64,000 bases of DNA from the sequence record MN871444.1; one strand, 5' to 3'. This document shows, piece by piece, positions 5,193 to 47,029 of this stretch. The translations under genes were made by a program, and so were the position numbers. Numbering within the stretch: position 1 is the first letter of the stretch; the number at the start of each line of letters is the position of its first letter. The notes beneath the pieces were generated by a model. The model was not told the DNA's origin. It saw nothing but the letters and a program-made list of their open reading frames with translations, and did not search any database.

Positions 5193-6485
5193 ATGACTGG
5201 GTTGGTGAACACCCCACAATCAGATTTACCGGACTCCCCGACGTCGTACGCCGAGGTCCATCAGATGGTGACCGAACTCGCGCACCAGCAAAACGACATC
5301 AGCAAAAAAGACCATCAAGTACAAGAACATACTCAGGTCGTCGATGAACTTCGCAATACCGGGGATATGATAGCAGCATTAGGGGCTATCGTTAAATACA
5401 ATATCGATGGTAAGGCAATGACCCCATTTCAGTCTTCGCTGATGAAAAATGCGTTATGGCATAGTGGGGCTATTAGTCAAGAGGCCAATGATAGCGATAC
5501 CATCATCTCCATGGAGTCTTTACGAAAAATCCTGGCCGATATATGGGTTGCAATTAAAAACAGCTTAAAACGGCTTTTAGAGCGTTTAATTGACTTTTTA
5601 ACGGCCTACTACGGAATGCTGAATACCGTTGAAGATTTGGCATTGAAATTAAAAGCCATCCTCAAAGAAAATAACTGGCAGTCAGTGACAGTGACTTCTT
5701 TCTCTTCCAGTAATGCCCGCAAGCTTGCAGTCGGTGGTAAACTCAAATCAACCTGGGTAGAAGACACAGCTACGGTACTCAAGGAGATGGCTACGTCCGA
5801 CAAAGATGTAATCGATGCCGTGGGTGATTTTAATCTTGAAGCAACCAACCAAGTAATTAAAACTCTGAGAACTGATAAACTTCCTGATTTTAACTGGGGT
5901 GTTTTATCTGGCACGATCGGTACCTTGCGTCGAACTATCACCTCCACCATTTCTCGGTATGGGGTAACAACGTACGCAAAACCCTTCGGCGTAGACACTT
6001 ATTACTGTAGTGGGGTGCTACCCGGTGAATGGCAATTGGGGTGTAAGCAAATCCCAGTTCAGAATGCCGGTAGCCGACATGAAGCGGCTAAGGCAATCAT
6101 TGAAGGTATGGGTGACCAGTACTTCGTTATTTTGTCCCGAGAACAAACCGGGCCAGATGAACTCCCACTACCGTCGTTGAATGTGATTGAATCCGGATGC
6201 GATGATATCCTGAAAATAATCAGTATACTGAAAGAGTCCACTCAGAAACTGGATGTGGAGCTTAATCAGGCACTGAAAAAATCAATTGGCGTCATCGACG
6301 GACTCATGTCGAGGGTGCAGAACAGTGTCGAGGTTAAAGACCGAGATGCCGTGGACTTTGTCATGCGGGCAACGCAAATCTCCAGCAAACTCAGTCGCCC
6401 TTATTTGCAGGTATTGGGGAATATCCTACCAGCGTATACCCGGGCATTATTTCAGTGTGTTGCGGTTTATCGTAACGGAGCATAA
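5193..6485 (+). CDS. Internal head protein paralogue
   Basis: ISME|SLRKILADIWVAIKNSL motif, homologous to the two preceding genes. Confidence 0.65.
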   Translation: MTGLVNTPQSDLPDSPTSYAEVHQMVTELAHQQNDISKKDHQVQEHTQVVDELRNTGDMIAALGAIVKYNIDGKAMTPFQSSLMKNALWHSGAISQEANDSDTIISMESLRKILADIWVAIKNSLKRLLERLIDFLTAYYGMLNTVEDLALKLKAILKENNWQSVTVTSFSSSNARKLAVGGKLKSTWVEDTATVLKEMATSDKDVIDAVGDFNLEATNQVIKTLRTDKLPDFNWGVLSGTIGTLRRTITSTISRYGVTTYAKPFGVDTYYCSGVLPGEWQLGCKQIPVQNAGSRHEAAKAIIEGMGDQYFVILSREQTGPDELPLPSLNVIESGCDDILKIISILKESTQKLDVELNQALKKSIGVIDGLMSRVQNSVEVKDRDAVDFVMRATQISSKLSRPYLQVLGNILPAYTRALFQCVAVYRNGA

Positions 6486-13146: not shown

Positions 13147-13174
13147 GGGAGGGCGAAAGCCCTCCCTTTATGTC
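13147..13174 (+). terminator. Rho-independent terminator
   Basis: GGGAGGGC-GAAA-GCCCTCCC followed by TTTATGTC. Confidence 0.85.
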
Positions 13175-13211
13175 ATTTTTATAAAACCATCAAATAAAAT
13201 AATTATAAACC

Positions 13212-13219
13212 TATATAAC
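13212..13219 (+). promoter_or_regulatory. Variant early promoter TATATAAC
   Basis: One mismatch to TATATTAC, with the same upstream A-tract/TTA context as the other copies. Confidence 0.45.
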
Positions 13220-13289
13220 TTGGGTGAGTGGTACCTGATATGTTTCTTGAGTGGTAACAATGAAACATGAAACAAAAACCTTATGCACG

Positions 13290-13297
13290 TATATTAC
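13290..13297 (+). promoter_or_regulatory. phiKZ-type early (virion RNAP) promoter TATATTAC
   Basis: Exact match to the phiKZ early consensus, intergenic, upstream of the accessory small-ORF cassette. Confidence 0.7.
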
Positions 13298-13358
13298 TTA
13301 CTTAGGGTTTAAATGTACCACATAAATGTTCTTTTTTTAAATCTAAGAGGAATTCATT

Positions 13359-13760
13359 ATGAAAGCTCAAGCTGTCCGCAATTCAGAAATCAAATCTCGT
13401 CGCGCTACCTGGTTGGCCATCCTGGCTATCGCATTATTTGCAATCATTACATCTACCGGTTATGCTAAAGAAGCCACCATTAAGCCGGCTTTCTCCAGCC
13501 TGAAAGCATTCCAGTTAAAAGCCGATGACCAAAAACTGACCGGCGCCCGTTTCGGTTGGTGCTTCCCAACCCCGAAAGATGGGGTGCAGTGCCAGACTGT
13601 TAATGGCACTGCAGTAACTGACCTTGGCCCTGGCGAGGATGATGCCCAAGCAAACAGTAACGAATTAGGTGACGGCTCTACCGTGTTTTCGGTAACCCTG
13701 CTTCCCGAAACTACGGTTAAAGAGATGAAATCAATCTACGATTATACCTGGAGTCACTAA
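13359..13760 (+). CDS. Exported hypothetical protein (signal peptide)
   Basis: Basic n-region with SRR, hydrophobic h-region WLAILAIALFAII, cleavage-like GYA|K. GAGGA RBS. One Cys pair. Confidence 0.65.
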   Translation: MKAQAVRNSEIKSRRATWLAILAIALFAIITSTGYAKEATIKPAFSSLKAFQLKADDQKLTGARFGWCFPTPKDGVQCQTVNGTAVTDLGPGEDDAQANSNELGDGSTVFSVTLLPETTVKEMKSIYDYTWSH

Positions 13761-14143
13761 TGTTAAAATTCCCGTTAGAGTTAATGGATTTACGTACTGT
13801 ACGTAATACCGACGTGTTTGCATATGCTGATTTTATTTTTGTTTCATTACTGGACAAATGCCATTCACTCTACGGGACCAATATCGAAGACCAAAACAAA
13901 AAAGATTTCAGTTACGTGGTGCGGACTGTAAAATTACTGTTCCGCGATTATCGAGTTGTGTGGGTAGATAAGAAAGACTCCCCACACACAAAAATAGCGA
14001 CACTCCCCGAAACCACTAAAGCGGGGTATTCCTTGGAATACTTACTGACTAGTCACGGGGATGTTAGCTGGACGGTTAGATTAATTGATTCCCAAAAAAT
14101 CATTTGTTCTGGGATATTTCCGCCATGGGAGAAATCATGTTAG
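13760..14143 (+). CDS. Hypothetical protein, LPExxxAGY paralogue 1
   Basis: 127 aa, motif LPETTKAGY. TAATG coupling. Confidence 0.6.
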   Translation: MLKFPLELMDLRTVRNTDVFAYADFIFVSLLDKCHSLYGTNIEDQNKKDFSYVVRTVKLLFRDYRVVWVDKKDSPHTKIATLPETTKAGYSLEYLLTSHGDVSWTVRLIDSQKIICSGIFPPWEKSC

Positions 14144-14535
14144 ATTTTAAATTGGCACTCAAATCACTACAAGAATTAAAAACAACTAGCGTTATTACTT
14201 ACATTGACCATTACTTGATTTATGCCGCCGATTACCTGGGTGATGTTACTCGCAAACCCAACGCCCAAGACGGGTTGGCTGGTCACATTAAAGATACCAT
14301 TTCAAGCATGATAAAAATCATGTGCTACGACCAGACTATCGTGAAGGTGCACAGTCATCGTTATTACCCTGACGGTAAATCAATCAACCTACCCGAGTTG
14401 GCATTGGCTGGATATGAAATACACTGGGTGGAATCGGGAATTTCCGTTAATGGACTTACGTCAGGTTTTCAATGGAAAATCGTTAGAAAGGATTCAATGA
14501 AGGTGATTTGTGCAGGGAGTAGTCAACTTCGTTAG
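14137..14535 (+). CDS. Hypothetical protein, LPExxxAGY paralogue 2
   Basis: Motif LPELALAGY. ATG 14137 (GGGAGA RBS) is preferred over TTG 14104. Confidence 0.6.
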   Translation: MLDFKLALKSLQELKTTSVITYIDHYLIYAADYLGDVTRKPNAQDGLAGHIKDTISSMIKIMCYDQTIVKVHSHRYYPDGKSINLPELALAGYEIHWVESGISVNGLTSGFQWKIVRKDSMKVICAGSSQLR

Positions 14536-14556
14536 TTGGGTCTACGGACCCAACTA
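14533..14556. terminator. Perfect 10-bp hairpin (possible terminator or processing site)
   Basis: TAGTTGGGTC-TACG-GACCCAACTA. The T-rich tract begins a few bases downstream. Confidence 0.45.
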
Positions 14557-14589
14557 GCAATACCTTTATTTTTATTTTGAGGTGGTATC

Positions 14590-14979
14590 ATGAGCATTAA
14601 TTTTCTTCCCGATAACATCAATGAACTCATGGGAGTTACTGCACAGCAAGAAATCGAATTGCTGGTACTACTCGATAAAAGTACAGGGTTAAATAGTCTA
14701 TTTGAGGCGTCTACGGATGACCTGTTGCGTATTTATACCAAAGCCACAGATTTATTATCATCAGACCAAGTCTACTATAGGCCGAATATGGCAAAAGTGG
14801 TTGACGGTTTGATGGTACTGCCCGTTGTACTACCTGAGCTTGAACACGCTGGGTATGTTGTTGAAATAAGCAGCAGGGATTTTAATCAGTATCCTTGTTG
14901 CGTAATGGCCAGGATAATCGCACCTCAACCATCGGGGTGTGAGTTCTCCTGGGAATTTGAAATAAACCGTACGGAGTAA
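14590..14979 (+). CDS. Hypothetical protein, LPExxxAGY paralogue 3
   Basis: Motif LPELEHAGY. GAGGTGG RBS. Confidence 0.6.
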   Translation: MSINFLPDNINELMGVTAQQEIELLVLLDKSTGLNSLFEASTDDLLRIYTKATDLLSSDQVYYRPNMAKVVDGLMVLPVVLPELEHAGYVVEISSRDFNQYPCCVMARIIAPQPSGCEFSWEFEINRTE

Positions 14980-14988
14980 TTTACATAG

Positions 14989-15375
14989 ATGCGCTGGTTA
15001 TTTTTAATTATATCAGTAATTATTTGTTCCAATGCCCCGGCCGAAGAAGTACGCGTCACAGACATCGTACTTTTTCCCGGTGCTCAAACCGCTATGATGC
15101 CAACTGTTTTCGATCTAAGACAAGATTTGGTATTAGACCCAGAAGACAGTCAAGGATACTGTCTGGGTATGCGAACGGGACATATGGGGTGTTTTACGGT
15201 CCGAGGCCGTTATCTCGGAGATAAAAAGGTCAGTGCATACTACAATGGTGACGACCATCACGTGTATGCGTTTGACCAGGTGCCGGTGCATTTGCGTCCG
15301 GTAGTTCAAAATGCATTCTTACGAGAGTGGGCGGTCGACCCCACTAAAGGATGGCTTGAAACTCAATCGCAGTAG
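14989..15375 (+). CDS. Exported hypothetical protein (Sec signal peptide)
   Basis: MRWLFLIISVIICSNAPA|EEV fits an A-x-A signal peptidase site. Confidence 0.6.
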   Translation: MRWLFLIISVIICSNAPAEEVRVTDIVLFPGAQTAMMPTVFDLRQDLVLDPEDSQGYCLGMRTGHMGCFTVRGRYLGDKKVSAYYNGDDHHVYAFDQVPVHLRPVVQNAFLREWAVDPTKGWLETQSQ

Positions 15376-15431
15376 TAATGCGAACCTACCATGCCACGAT
15401 AGTCACGTGTGCATTCGAGGAGAAAATTTAA

Positions 15432-16226
15432 ATGACTACACACACGACATTCAAAACGATCGTAGTGTTAGCGATCGCGATGATTATTGCAGGCATTTTT
15501 AGTTTATATGCCCCCAATACCAGCGCTTCGCTTTCCACCGCGGTACCTACTTATAATGCCGTAAAAATGCAGCCCGTACAGGCTAAACATAAACTACCTT
15601 TAGAAACTGCAACGGTTTCAAAGACAGTGACTTTACGTTACACTACGCTTCCCAGGCCTAAGGTAAACGGTTTAGAGTCACACAAAAACCTGATTGAATT
15701 AGTCGCAAAATACACCGGGGTACAATCTTCACTTCTAGCATCAACCGCAGGGATTGAATCGAGGTATATTAGTCACGCAAAAAACAAAGGCGGTTCCTCC
15801 GCTCAGGGACTCTGTCAATTCACCAAGTCAACCTGGCATGCTACAGCAAAGAAATACGGCAAACAGTATGGGATAACTCCGGGCACCTCCCGGTTAGACC
15901 CCCGAGCTAATCTGCTGCTCTGTGCTGAACATATCAAGGAAAATGATGTTTATCTGACAAAGGTACTTAAACGCCCAGCCAAGCCATCTGAAATTTACAT
16001 GGCTCACTTCTTAGGAAGTGGTGGTGCAGTGGCATTGTTGAAAGCTAAACCAGGGTCCCGCGCAGATCACGCAACCCCGTCAGCCGCTCGTAATAATCCG
16101 CGTATGTTTTATGGTAAGAAAGGTAACGCGTATACCGTGGCTGATTTCAAACGCACCATTAAAATCAAGGTGCAACGGGAGCAAAGTAATTTCGCCGCGC
16201 TCGTCAATATGACGCCAAGCGCATAA
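15432..16226 (+). CDS. Lytic transglycosylase (SLT, phiKZ gp144-like catalytic domain) with N-terminal signal/anchor
   Basis: Catalytic GIES, SSAQGLCQFTKSTW, RLDPRAN and YMAHFLGSGGA motifs. Hydrophobic N-terminus IVVLAIAMIIAGIFSL. Confidence 0.8.
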   Translation: MTTHTTFKTIVVLAIAMIIAGIFSLYAPNTSASLSTAVPTYNAVKMQPVQAKHKLPLETATVSKTVTLRYTTLPRPKVNGLESHKNLIELVAKYTGVQSSLLASTAGIESRYISHAKNKGGSSAQGLCQFTKSTWHATAKKYGKQYGITPGTSRLDPRANLLLCAEHIKENDVYLTKVLKRPAKPSEIYMAHFLGSGGAVALLKAKPGSRADHATPSAARNNPRMFYGKKGNAYTVADFKRTIKIKVQREQSNFAALVNMTPSA

Positions 16227-16232
16227 ACCCAC

Positions 16233-16265
16233 AGGGGAGAGCTGCAGCTCTCCCCTTTTATGCCG
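16233..16265 (+). terminator. Rho-independent terminator
   Basis: AGGGGAGAGC-TGCA-GCTCTCCCCT followed by TTTATGCCG. Confidence 0.85.
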
Positions 16266-16288
16266 TTGATAAACCACAAGGTGATATC

Positions 16289-17020
16289 ATGACTGACCGT
16301 ATTAAGTACAATGAAACAACTGGGAAAGTGGAAGTGGATGCAGATGTTTGGGATATGATTGTTGATCAAATGCCGGGTAGTTGTATCGTTGACGAAGTAA
16401 AAATGAAAAAGCTGGCGAAAACCCATCACACAGAAATGGCTAAACTGCTGGGCATATCGCCGAATCAGCCTTATAAATTTCGCGTATTTTCAGGAGTCAA
16501 GAATAAACTAGCTTTATCATCCACATACCCGGAGACCATCATTGCTCTAGTGTCAGTAAACGAATCTAAACATGAATTCAATATATCTAATTTGAAATCA
16601 ATACTCAAATTAGAATTAAAGGAAATGTTGAACCATAGCACAAAACCGGGATTGGCAATGACCTTAGCCAACCTTATCGCAGGACGAGCAAAAAATCCTG
16701 CCCCAGCCACTGTATTCGAACTATCAAAGATATCTGGTTTCCCAACCCAAAAATTTATCATTACCCACTTACCCACCGATACTCCGACTACGATGACTAA
16801 TATAAAACAAATGGCCGTTACTGAGAGGTCTACTATTTTGGCGGTAGTTTTACGTGAACTTCAGTTATCGCCTTCCAATTTGGCAAAAGTGACTGGAATA
16901 GATAATGGTAATATTTCTAAATGGGTGCGCCACGGAAGAGTACCGCGTTTAGATGCATACGTAGCACTTTGCAAGTATTTCAATGTGCCGTTTGACTATT
17001 TTAGCGACTGGCTGGAATAA
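16289..17020 (+). CDS. XRE/Cro-C1-type HTH transcriptional regulator (C-terminal HTH)
   Basis: LRELQLSPSNLAKVTGIDNGNISKWVRHGRVPRLDAYVALCKYFNVPFDYF is a canonical HTH_3 pattern. Confidence 0.75.
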   Translation: MTDRIKYNETTGKVEVDADVWDMIVDQMPGSCIVDEVKMKKLAKTHHTEMAKLLGISPNQPYKFRVFSGVKNKLALSSTYPETIIALVSVNESKHEFNISNLKSILKLELKEMLNHSTKPGLAMTLANLIAGRAKNPAPATVFELSKISGFPTQKFIITHLPTDTPTTMTNIKQMAVTERSTILAVVLRELQLSPSNLAKVTGIDNGNISKWVRHGRVPRLDAYVALCKYFNVPFDYFSDWLE

Positions 17021-45183: not shown

Positions 45184-45714
45184 ATGATTAAACTCAAAAA
45201 CCTGTCCATCAAACACCATGCTATAATTAATTTAGGTACTGATATAAAAAAAGTACCGATATTTCAGGATGATGCTGGTCGGCTAGTGACGGATATGTTT
45301 AAGCGCATGTCTCCCATTACGCTTAAACTACTGGTGGTGGAAGATGGTTTTATTCGGGGGTGGGACCAGGATGTCACCATGTTAACCTTATATGAAAAAT
45401 GCAGTATCATTGAGGTTGACCCAAAAACCCTACCTCCCGGATTTTTTAATGAGTCTAATCGACCTTATTGGATGTGGACTGAGGAACAGGGCGTGAGTCG
45501 ACGCCCATTAACTCATGAAGAAATTATTCACAACAATACAGCAGAAAAGAAAAAACGACTAACTGATGCCCTGTTACGCTACCAGACGTTACAGATAGTA
45601 TCAACCGTACGTGCATTATCTCAGGATGAGAGACAAGAACTGGATGACGTTAAAAACAAAATTGTTATTTTGAATGATCTTGATTTGACGTCAGAAATCA
45701 CTGATTGGCCTTAG
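45184..45714 (+). CDS. Tail fibre assembly chaperone (Tfa-like)
   Basis: Follows the fibre. IRGWDQDVTML...IIEVD..LPPGF and the C-terminal helical ...LNDLDL...WP end. Confidence 0.65.
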   Translation: MIKLKNLSIKHHAIINLGTDIKKVPIFQDDAGRLVTDMFKRMSPITLKLLVVEDGFIRGWDQDVTMLTLYEKCSIIEVDPKTLPPGFFNESNRPYWMWTEEQGVSRRPLTHEEIIHNNTAEKKKRLTDALLRYQTLQIVSTVRALSQDERQELDDVKNKIVILNDLDLTSEITDWP

Positions 45715-45722
45715 GAGGTATC

Positions 45723-46361
45723 ATGGCACTTGATTTAACCAAACTCACCACCGACAGTTTTACTCAACAGTTCATCATCACTAACCGGGTAAATGTTGAA
45801 GCCGGGTATGTCAATAACCCAGATGACTTGGGTGGTGAGACCAATCACGGTATTACTAAGGCGACCGCTCTGGAATGGAAATCCCTGTGGGCAAAATACA
45901 ATTGGAATGGCGATATGAAAACCATGCCCTATGCGTTAGCTTACGACATTTATGTCCAGGGGTGGTGGAATAAAATGCTGCTCGATCAGGTGAGCGCGGT
46001 ACACCCAGTACTGGCTGACCGTCTGTTCGACTGGGGCATTAACTCTGGCCGTCAAAAAGGCGTGCTCGCGCTGCAACGTATTTTGAATGTCTGCAATCGC
46101 AACGGCAAAGATTACGCTGACATCACTGCAGATGGCGCAATGGGTCCGGGAACCATGACTGCATTGAAAGCATTCATGGGTGTACGCGGTAAAGCAGGCC
46201 TGCGTTATCTCATTACGACACATAGTGGGATGCAGGCTTCTTACTACGTAGATATCTCAGAACAACGCGCTGCGAACGAAACGTTCACCAACGGTTGGCT
46301 CAGTCGCGGGTATTTTAATGATTCAATGTACGCCGCATTGATCATGAACGGTACACTTTAA
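45723..46361 (+). CDS. Endolysin, glycoside hydrolase family 108 with PG-binding domain
   Basis: EAGYVNNPDDLGGETNHGIT, FDWGINSG, LQRILN and ADGAMGPGT. ATG 45723 with GGAGGT RBS. Confidence 0.85.
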   Translation: MALDLTKLTTDSFTQQFIITNRVNVEAGYVNNPDDLGGETNHGITKATALEWKSLWAKYNWNGDMKTMPYALAYDIYVQGWWNKMLLDQVSAVHPVLADRLFDWGINSGRQKGVLALQRILNVCNRNGKDYADITADGAMGPGTMTALKAFMGVRGKAGLRYLITTHSGMQASYYVDISEQRAANETFTNGWLSRGYFNDSMYAALIMNGTL

Positions 46362-46440
46362 CATAACAGGGATATAGTTGGTGATTGGAGGGGTTATCCT
46401 TCGGTCACCAACTATGTTTTATGTCGCCTCAGGAGGCGCT

Positions 46441-46851
46441 ATGTCAGCTTTAGAGTCAACACTTAACACCTACGGAGTTTGGATTAAAGGGATTTTGTGG
46501 GTTGCCAGTATCGCTCTGGCGGGATGGCTTGGCCACCACATGACTGCACTGAGCTATGAGTTGGACCAGACCAAGTCTCAGTTATCTACGGTGTCTGGGA
46601 GTTACACCGAATATCAGCGGATGGTAAAAGAACGTGATGACTTGAAAGATAAGTACATCAATGCCAAAGCCGATTTAGACAAACTACAGCAGGATAAACA
46701 AAATGACCTCACTAATAAAACTCAGCAGCTTCTTGATACTTTGCGCAGCCCTAACAGCGTGTACGCAAAAGCAGATTGTGGAGAAGCCGGTAGTTATCCA
46801 ACAGTCTTTGGAACCAGTTTCGGCGCAACTGATGCAGCCCCATCAAAATAA
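46441..46851 (+). CDS. Inner-membrane spanin (Rz-like)
   Basis: N-terminal TM helix WIKGILWVASIALAGWLG followed by a periplasmic coiled coil. Follows the endolysin. Confidence 0.75.
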   Translation: MSALESTLNTYGVWIKGILWVASIALAGWLGHHMTALSYELDQTKSQLSTVSGSYTEYQRMVKERDDLKDKYINAKADLDKLQQDKQNDLTNKTQQLLDTLRSPNSVYAKADCGEAGSYPTVFGTSFGATDAAPSK

Positions 46852-47029
46852 CTTCAATGACCGGATGCAAATCTTTTTGCGTAATAAAGACGGGCAAATT
46901 CGGTTCTCTGAAAAAGACGCTACCTGGCTGACCCTCTTTGCCGGGGAAGCCGATAGCGTAACGCAACAAATGTCGGGTTTGCAACAGCAGACCACATTAG
47001 ATCGTAATTTGATTAATGAAAAAAAATAA
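46703..47029 (+). CDS. Outer-membrane spanin lipoprotein (Rz1-like), overlapping the i-spanin
   Basis: Lipobox LTA-C in MTSLIKLSSFLILCAALTAC. Starts 149 nt inside the i-spanin in another frame. Confidence 0.75.
   Translation: MTSLIKLSSFLILCAALTACTQKQIVEKPVVIQQSLEPVSAQLMQPHQNNFNDRMQIFLRNKDGQIRFSEKDATWLTLFAGEADSVTQQMSGLQQQTTLDRNLINEKK

Follow-up and report, generated by a model that had tools for sequence, protein, structure and literature searches.

A promoter-linked cassette for a membrane-tethered lytic transglycosylase and two exported orphan proteins in Klebsiella phage KpGz_1: a candidate for early action on the cell wall

Peptidoglycan-cutting enzymes of phages are as a rule placed either at entry, as virion lysins, or at exit, as endolysins. 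How, then, should a lytic transglycosylase be placed whose gene follows promoter motifs of early type, encodes the signal for its own export and stands beside genes for other exported proteins? This question is raised by a six-gene cassette of Serratia/Klebsiella phage KpGz_1 (269,351 bp; host Klebsiella pneumoniae), which was analyzed in a window of 64,000 nt comprising bases 1-64000 of record MN871444.1. Genes and their products are named here by the first nucleotide of the gene in this window, so that the transglycosylase is 15432 and the two small exported proteins are 13359 and 14989. The answer that is developed below, which is held tentatively and falls just short of being probable, is that the tethered transglycosylase and the two periplasmic proteins form an early envelope module that would cut the wall locally before lysis.

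KpGz_1 is a member of Eowynvirus, and over the 3.5 kb spanning the cassette its sequence shows about 90% identity with that of Klebsiella phage vB_KvM-Eowyn from the same genus. It carries a gene for chimallin, the nuclear-shell protein (phrog_4795 match, E 2e-87), and another for the beta subunit of a multisubunit phage RNA polymerase (RNAP), and its gene order follows the phiKZ numbering of the Eowyn annotation, features that together identify it as a phiKZ-like nucleus-forming jumbo phage. The cassette forms one unit, in which a terminator is followed by two tandem promoter motifs, six plus-strand genes and a second terminator. Its features are given below with the ratio of nonsynonymous to synonymous substitution rates (dN/dS) of each gene against Eowyn and, where relevant, position weight matrix (PWM) scores and Kyte-Doolittle (KD) hydropathy.

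13147-13166, plus strand: terminator hairpin ending the upstream virion-gene operon; 8-bp GC stem then a T-run, -21.6 kcal/mol, z score -6.1.
13182-13225, plus strand: promoter P1 of early type, PWM score 32.3, with its core TATATAAC at 13212-13219.
13260-13303, plus strand: promoter P2 of early type, one of the highest-scoring of the 24 sites (PWM score 43.0), with its core TATATTAC at 13290-13297.
13359-13760, plus strand: predicted exported protein of 133 amino acids (aa), with a signal peptide and an orphan alpha/beta domain holding a C-x9-C pair; hydrophobic run KD 2.64, dN/dS 0.07.
13760-14143, plus strand: 127-aa cytoplasmic protein of the LPEL..AGY family, paralogue of 14137 (E 4e-7); dN/dS 0.05.
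14137-14535, plus strand: 132-aa cytoplasmic paralogue, LPEL..AGY family; dN/dS 0.07.
14531-14558, plus strand: strong hairpin inside the cassette, covering the 14137 stop codon; 12-bp stem, z score -5.8.
14590-14979, plus strand: 129-aa cytoplasmic protein, third member of the LPEL..AGY family (motif in alignments A1 and A7); dN/dS 0.10.
14989-15375, plus strand: predicted exported 128-aa protein with a signal peptide, distant paralogue of 13359; dN/dS 0.04.
15432-16226, plus strand: 264-aa predicted lytic transglycosylase; anchor at residues 9-27, tether of about 45 residues, SLT domain at about 70-250, catalytic E109; dN/dS 0.024.
16233-16267, plus strand: terminator hairpin (16233-16256) with the conserved tail TTTTATGCCGT, ending the cassette.

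All six genes are under purifying selection, with dN/dS values from 0.02 to 0.10, the lowest being that of the transglycosylase. Two further lineages, whose SLT proteins are 39-48% identical, were compared: L008, a 94-kb Logan contig, and L016, a complete 278.5-kb IMG/VR genome. Both show the same order, namely a 454-aa virion gene, a terminator, an early-type motif, small genes, a 14989-type gene, an anchored SLT and a terminator. The hairpin at 13147-13166 is kept in Eowyn and L008, and the terminator after the SLT gene has its equivalent in L008 and L016.

The transglycosylase carries a single Pfam domain, SLT (PF01464, GH23), over residues 92-171 (29.4 bits against a cut-off of 21.3), and 15705-15944 is among the matches when this model is run over the genome. 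The Pfam scan found neither PG_binding_1 nor any other peptidoglycan-binding domain in it, as an earlier note on this DNA, made from its letters, had already read. The match of the protein to the phiKZ gp144 catalytic domain (3BKH/9XPS) has an E of 2e-25 and about 37% identity. In this alignment E109, E170 and Y189 stand opposite gp144 E115, E178 and Y197, the last two of which are functionally significant in gp144; E109-S110 corresponds to gp144 E115-S116. E109 is invariant in the 12 sequences of the family alignment (A6). 15432 is predicted, on these grounds, to be a catalytically intact family-1 lytic transglycosylase. Cys128 and Cys164 were considered as a periplasmic disulfide and rejected, the pair being present in P0002-P0006 (L008-type) and absent from L016 and the sister clade described below.

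At its N-terminus 15432 has the run TIVVLAIAMIIAGIFSLYA, which is 19 residues long, uncharged and strongly hydrophobic (KD 2.48; Gly/Ala/Ser/Thr share 0.37), and about 45 low-complexity residues separate it from the fold, so that the anchor lies 82 residues from the catalytic Glu. Relatives at about 40% identity (P0002-P0006 and L016) have the same anchor layout, with 97-102 residues between anchor and catalytic Glu, and no AXA site adjoins the anchor in any of them. A possible TSA/S cleavage site (the slash marking the cut, here and below) is present in the KpGz_1 protein, and cleavage of its anchor at that point is therefore uncertain. The anchor is predicted to lie N-in and to be uncleaved or poorly cleaved, holding the enzyme at the inner membrane. 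Since the protein carries a signal of its own for export, its export would be independent of a holin, in agreement with what the earlier note had proposed.

Such an enzyme calls to mind the signal-anchor-release (SAR) endolysins P1 Lyz, phage 21 R21 and phiKMV gp45, with which it shares the N-terminal insertion of a muralytic enzyme into the inner membrane, independent of a holin. Hence the main rival explanation, that 15432 is an auxiliary endolysin delivered by Sec, restrained in the periplasm or membrane and, like SAR and signal-peptide endolysins, put to work on the wall only upon the loss of membrane potential that the holin brings about. Phages are well known to export muralytic enzymes (P1 Lyz, R21, Lys44), and the intact catalytic residues of 15432 fit this explanation. 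A SAR domain, however, is weakly hydrophobic, rich in Gly and Ala, and abuts the catalytic domain, whereas the anchor of 15432 is too hydrophobic (KD 2.5 with the low share of small residues given above) and a tether of 45-100 residues precedes the catalytic domain in this family. For these two reasons a release switch of the SAR type is not expected in 15432. Further differences from the SAR endolysins are that no pinholin lies beside the gene and that its promoter is of the early class, the latter also counting against an auxiliary endolysin.

A maximum-likelihood tree of 30 SLT domains places the protein among its relatives. One side of a split with support 99/98 contains six anchored and six signal-peptide small SLTs, which form separate groups of anchored proteins (97/89) and of signal-peptide proteins (88/93); on the other side are the virion domains of gp181 type, 17 in number, together with the phikzvirus SL2 protein of gp144 type. 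Members of the former side include Moabite gp016, FBKp24 gp104, SPLA10 gp182, pVa-21 gp134 and a protein of PhiEaH1, and the N1M2 SLT, which stands outside the tree, was assigned by sequence (alignment match E 9e-35; signal peptide STAYA/S). 15432 is thus placed, by phylogeny, in a distinct clade of exported small SLTs of enterobacterial and Vibrio jumbo phages, for which no characterizing study was found in a limited literature search. Because this clade is not that of gp144, 15432 is no gp144 orthologue. The earlier description of it as gp144-like therefore stands at the level of the domain (E 2e-25) and falls as a statement of orthology. The SLTs of Moabite, FBKp24, SPLA10, PhiEaH1 and pVa-21 form a sister group that is like 15432 in having its own signal and in being encoded away from the spanins. 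They and the N1M2 protein differ from it in that their signal peptides are short, cleavable and of the AXA type and a long tether is missing, and, unlike in KpGz_1, the sister SLTs have no neighboring genes of the 13359 or 14989 type. Within the other side of the tree, the gp144-type protein of SL2 groups (99/97) with the virion gp181-type SLT domains of two contigs, a position which suggests that gp144 arose from a virion lysin domain within its own lineage.

phiKZ gp144 (KZ144, PDB 3BKH) and 15432 share a homologous SLT catalytic domain, with the catalytic Glu and equivalents of E178 and Y197, but where gp144 has an N-terminal PG_binding_1 domain 15432 has a membrane anchor and tether. In phiKZ, gp144 is also a structural protein that forms a wedge in the virion neck (PMC13250141), and chain S of PDB entry 9xps is the top match for 15432, which raises the alternative that 15432 too is packaged as a virion component. 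This is very improbable: the N-terminal anchor directs the protein to the inner membrane, the N-terminal domain of gp144 is missing from it, it is not orthologous to gp144, and its gene lies behind an early-type promoter, not in a late operon.

The promoters bear on when the cassette would be read. The exact core TATATTAC occurs at 19 sites in the KpGz_1 genome, all on the plus strand, and 17 of the 19 are intergenic, although intergenic sequence makes up 8.6% of the total. A weight matrix trained on these 17 intergenic sites and run over the whole 269-kb genome returned 24 sites, every one of them intergenic and on the plus strand. They lie 12-213 nt 5' of the next called plus-strand gene, with the exception of a site at 88652 ahead of a 1.2-kb stretch without a called gene. 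In these weight-matrix sites the core is preceded, at distances of about 6-9 and 12-20 bases, by conserved A-rich and TTAT blocks. Both cassette sites score within the range of the training sites, P2 having the exact core and P1 a core one base off, in keeping with the tandem early-type promoters that had been called at 13212 and 13290. TATATTAC is the core listed for the early promoters of phiKZ and 201phi2-1 (PMC7058600, Table 2; reference cores also in PMC11512511), and the KpGz_1 motif matches the three-block layout described for the promoters of these two phages (PMC11512511; PMC8244752). A tandem pair of the same motif precedes the chimallin gene of KpGz_1, and another site precedes its gene for the RNAP beta subunit. 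The whole P1 motif recurs in the corresponding position in two distant relatives, L008 (TATATAAC at 5399) and L016 (CATATTAC); P2 is kept in Eowyn and missing from L008. The assignment of the cassette motifs to the early class of promoters is well supported by these comparisons.

Similar arrangements are found in part of the clade of exported SLTs. In N1M2 the exported SLT gene lies 60 nt behind a promoter motif of early type; its authors classed this promoter as early and listed a transglycosylase among the genes behind it (PMC7058600). A strand-specific motif of pVa-21 (nine forward sites, none reverse and none in the control) has one of its sites about 50-60 nt ahead of the SLT gene, and the SLT gene of FBKp24 is the last of three consecutive genes behind an annotated promoter whose core is TATATCAC.

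A set of lysis genes lies 30 kb downstream in the window:

45723-46361, plus strand: GH108-type endolysin, with tblastn matches in 500 phage records, a large number of which bear the annotation endolysin or GH108.
46378-47029, plus strand: overlapping inner-membrane spanin (46378-46851) and outer-membrane spanin lipoprotein (46703-47029), recognized from the N-terminal transmembrane domain and the LTAC lipobox in the translations.

The product of 45723-46361 also matches the NCBIfam model for holin-associated muramidase, with an E of 2e-16 that is under the curated cut-off. The distance of about 30 kb that had been noted between 15432 and the lysis genes is borne out by this endolysin and spanin pair, which sets 15432 apart from a gp144-type endolysin, known to sit in a lysis cassette with holin, regulator and spanin genes (PMC12894885). 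The holin candidate that had been named upstream of the GH108 gene does not hold up: this open reading frame (ORF), 45184-45714, resembles a tail fibre assembly gene (phrog_136, E 7e-17) and has no transmembrane segment; a holin gene of the phage was not found. Beyond the window, a minus-strand gene at genome positions 67400-73876 (3400-9876 in L003) encodes a 2158-aa virion protein of the gp181 type, predicted to be the entry lysin, whose SLT domain is 47% identical to 15432. As 15432 comes in addition to a complete endolysin and spanin set and to a virion SLT, it probably does not serve as the chief lysis enzyme.

A second lysin was looked for in six further genomes that encode an exported SLT:

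L016: second endolysin-type gene, GH108.
pVa-21: second endolysin-type gene, GH108.
SPLA10: GH19 'endolysin' adjoining the tail-sheath gene.
Moabite: 'tail lysozyme' by the baseplate and sheath genes, with a sub-cut-off PG_binding_1 match (20.5 bits against 23).
PhiEaH1: 241-aa ORF with a sub-cut-off PG_binding_1 match (20.7 bits against 23).
FBKp24: four family models yielded no second lysin.

Five of the six have another gene or domain match of endolysin type, and four have a large virion protein with an SLT domain, as KpGz_1 does. The exported SLT is regularly accompanied in its genome by two other murein enzymes, which argues against a role as principal endolysin here and in the relatives, and the proposal of the earlier note that 15432 does not serve lysis stands in this form. 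An auxiliary endolysin, as described above, finds some support in FBKp24, with its lack of a second lysin under these models, and in Moabite, whose annotators named the exported SLT the endolysin (PMC6639629); the Moabite spanins stand alone, distant from this gene (PMC6639629). In KpGz_1, however, a soluble endolysin adjoining the spanins is already present. Together with the anchor, the tether and the promoter, this makes the auxiliary endolysin a serious contender that is nonetheless unlikely.

The module proposed here also comprises 13359 and 14989. A strongly hydrophobic N-terminal segment was found in 17 of the 300 called KpGz_1 genes; three of these are 13359, 14989 and 15432, and the segments are present in all orthologues of the three. 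Rule-based predictions of signal peptides give 13359 a positively charged n-region, a 16-residue h-region and a cut at GYA/K, after A36, and give 14989 a classical signal of 18 residues with a cut at APA/EE. The three cassette proteins are thereby predicted to carry their own Sec-type export signals, as the signal or anchor N-termini assigned to them earlier implied. The SRRATWL stretch of 13359 was dismissed as a twin-arginine translocation (Tat) signal, since the L008 orthologue lacks the RR, and a lipobox in 14989 was dismissed because the Ile at position -1 is unsuitable. A sub-cut-off Pfam match of the 13359 signal region to Herpes_TK_C (E 0.026) is probably due to chance.

The families of 13359 and 14989 can be aligned with each other, and a Phe, two Cys (C-x9-C), two Gly and a C-terminal Trp are invariant in the alignment. 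A small-protein family of eight members, each with an N-terminal hydrophobic segment, came out of a profile search against 1.84 billion representatives, and a word search for the small exported proteins returned close relatives only. The AlphaFold2 (AF2) model of 13359 reaches a predicted local distance difference test score (pLDDT) of about 90 for residues 41-133, but its fold is unmatched in the PDB by Foldseek (E > 1) or by VIA-align against 48,161 chains (best Z 3.0), and in BFVD the model retrieved only the Eowyn orthologue. None of the five small cassette proteins has a significant match in Pfam, PHROGs, NCBIfam or PADLOC, and a protein Atlas search yielded sub-threshold leads only (best 0.78). 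13359 and 14989 are best described as an orphan family of predicted periplasmic proteins, about 100 residues long when mature, with no known fold according to the model.

Are these proteins partners of the transglycosylase, or do they share a promoter with it by accident? The alternative that there is no single module, the cassette being a run of unrelated small early genes whose exported products are independent and have, for example, different envelope targets, draws on the variable content between promoter and SLT: the 13359 orthologue is kept in L008 (39% identity) and absent from L016, and L008 and L016 have an extra membrane protein of 74-77 aa. Three of the six cassette genes are moreover cytoplasmic, and the sister SLTs do without small exported partners. 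This alternative is rather improbable all the same, given that a 14989-type gene adjoins the SLT gene in all three lineages (KpGz_1, L008 and L016), lying directly upstream of it in L008 (44% identity) and L016 (36%), and that the small-protein family amounts to eight representative clusters, whose members with loci read are all in such cassettes.

A different use of the small proteins would be superinfection exclusion, in which 13359 and 14989 block the SLT domain of incoming sibling tails, much as T4 Spackle acts on gp5. Spackle, Ivy and MliC/PliC are small Sec-exported periplasmic binders of muramidase or transglycosylase and offer a possible analogy for both proteins, which show no sequence or structural likeness to them (Foldseek E > 1; VIA Z <= 3.0). 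Small periplasmic proteins behind an early-type promoter would suit this use, and so would the 47% identity between the virion and cassette SLT domains, by virtue of which a binder of one could bind the other. Exclusion would, however, leave the co-encoded active SLT unexplained, and the small proteins have no sequence or fold likeness to solved proteins (best VIA Z 3.0). As the function of the cassette, it appears quite improbable.

An early envelope module would work as follows. The virion-carried RNA polymerase would read the cassette promoters at the start of infection, and Sec would insert 15432 N-in, from where the tethered enzyme could reach the sacculus from the membrane side without a holin. 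There it may cut glycan strands locally as infection proceeds, loosening or conditioning the wall ahead of lysis, and 13359 and 14989 may act in the periplasm as partners or restrainers of the SLT. Exported or inner-membrane-anchored enzymes that cut glycan locally without lysis are exemplified by MltG and by the VirB1/EtgA type; MltG carries a YceG domain rather than SLT, and beyond the common SLT/GH23 fold the likeness of these enzymes to 15432 would be one of mode of action.

Several observations weigh against such a module. It is from the motif that we infer early expression of the cassette, and in Moabite, SPLA10 and PhiEaH1 no early-type motif was found directly upstream of the exported SLT, where only a hairpin was seen. 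Within the KpGz_1 cassette, the hairpin that had been noted at 14533 is real and stands between the promoters and the SLT gene, where it could halt early transcripts before they reach this gene, and no second promoter is recognizable. The 61-nt stretch 14525-14585 (-25.8 kcal/mol) includes a second helix of 6 bp besides the 12-bp stem, and in Eowyn the stem is the same and the loop differs. The hairpin was not passed by the terminator scan because its T-run begins 6 nt past the stem, and it is possibly an attenuator or partial terminator. The small proteins, in turn, have no informative relatives or fold in the profile search, the PDB or BFVD. Finally, no SLT homologue was found in the genome of Goslar, so that the module is not general to nucleus-forming phages. 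Goslar is said to bulge its host, and the lack of an SLT in this phage weakens host bulging as a general role of the exported SLT.

Public reads contain the cassette stretch only in wastewater and surface metagenomes and metatranscriptomes. Eight short contigs from RNA libraries lie inside the cassette and none in its flanks, a difference that is not significant under uniform coverage (p ~0.17) and to which DNA carry-over may contribute.

The LPEL..AGY proteins, of about 130 aa, are interspersed among the exported genes in KpGz_1, L008 (5767-6180 and 7046-7441) and L016 (2833-3192); the AF2 model of the paralogue 14137 is poor (pLDDT 61.5). Directly after the cassette lies a helix-turn-helix (HTH) gene of the Cro/C1 type (16289-17020), with nucleotide homology to Eowyn ending at about 16377. 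At this position Eowyn has a non-homologous gene of equal length, and a distant paralogue of the HTH gene is found at 188870-189601 of the KpGz_1 genome. Another cluster of putative membrane proteins, six small genes whose hydrophobic segments are either N-terminal or internal, occupies genome positions 207246-212685, and an early-type motif at 208168 precedes one of the six. As for the terminators, GC-rich hairpins of KpGz_1 are followed by a fixed tail, TTTTATGCCGT(C/T), with 26 exact sites genome-wide on both strands, 17 of them intergenic. In the window the tails lie at 16258, 23521, 28834 (minus strand), 47037 (minus strand) and 55631, and two back-to-back palindromic pairs occur at genome positions 103378/103397 and 211639/211658. 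The tail is also found behind hairpins in the distant relatives L008 and L016, and it is probably a terminator signature particular to this clade.

A wider form of the proposal would extend it to enterobacterial and Vibrio chimalliviruses at large, in which self-exporting SLTs would re-tailor the sacculus from the first minutes of infection while the nucleus grows. In Eowynvirus the enzyme would be tethered and accompanied by two periplasmic proteins of orphan fold, which would either restrain it or, like Spackle, block the SLT of incoming tails. In this extended form the proposal is speculative and on present evidence doubtful. Besides its enzymes of entry and exit, KpGz_1 encodes a third one, which is conserved, bears its own export signal, follows promoters of early type and belongs to a clade found across several jumbo-phage genera. 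Caution is warranted in annotation, where exported SLTs are now labeled 'endolysin' by default. If 15432 acts before lysis, the finding would bear on how nucleus-forming phages manage the cell envelope through a long latent period, and the tethered transglycosylase and its two orphan-fold periplasmic neighbors would be candidate modulators of murein enzymes. The attack of phages on the cell wall would then comprise a third, pre-lysis stage in addition to those of entry and exit.

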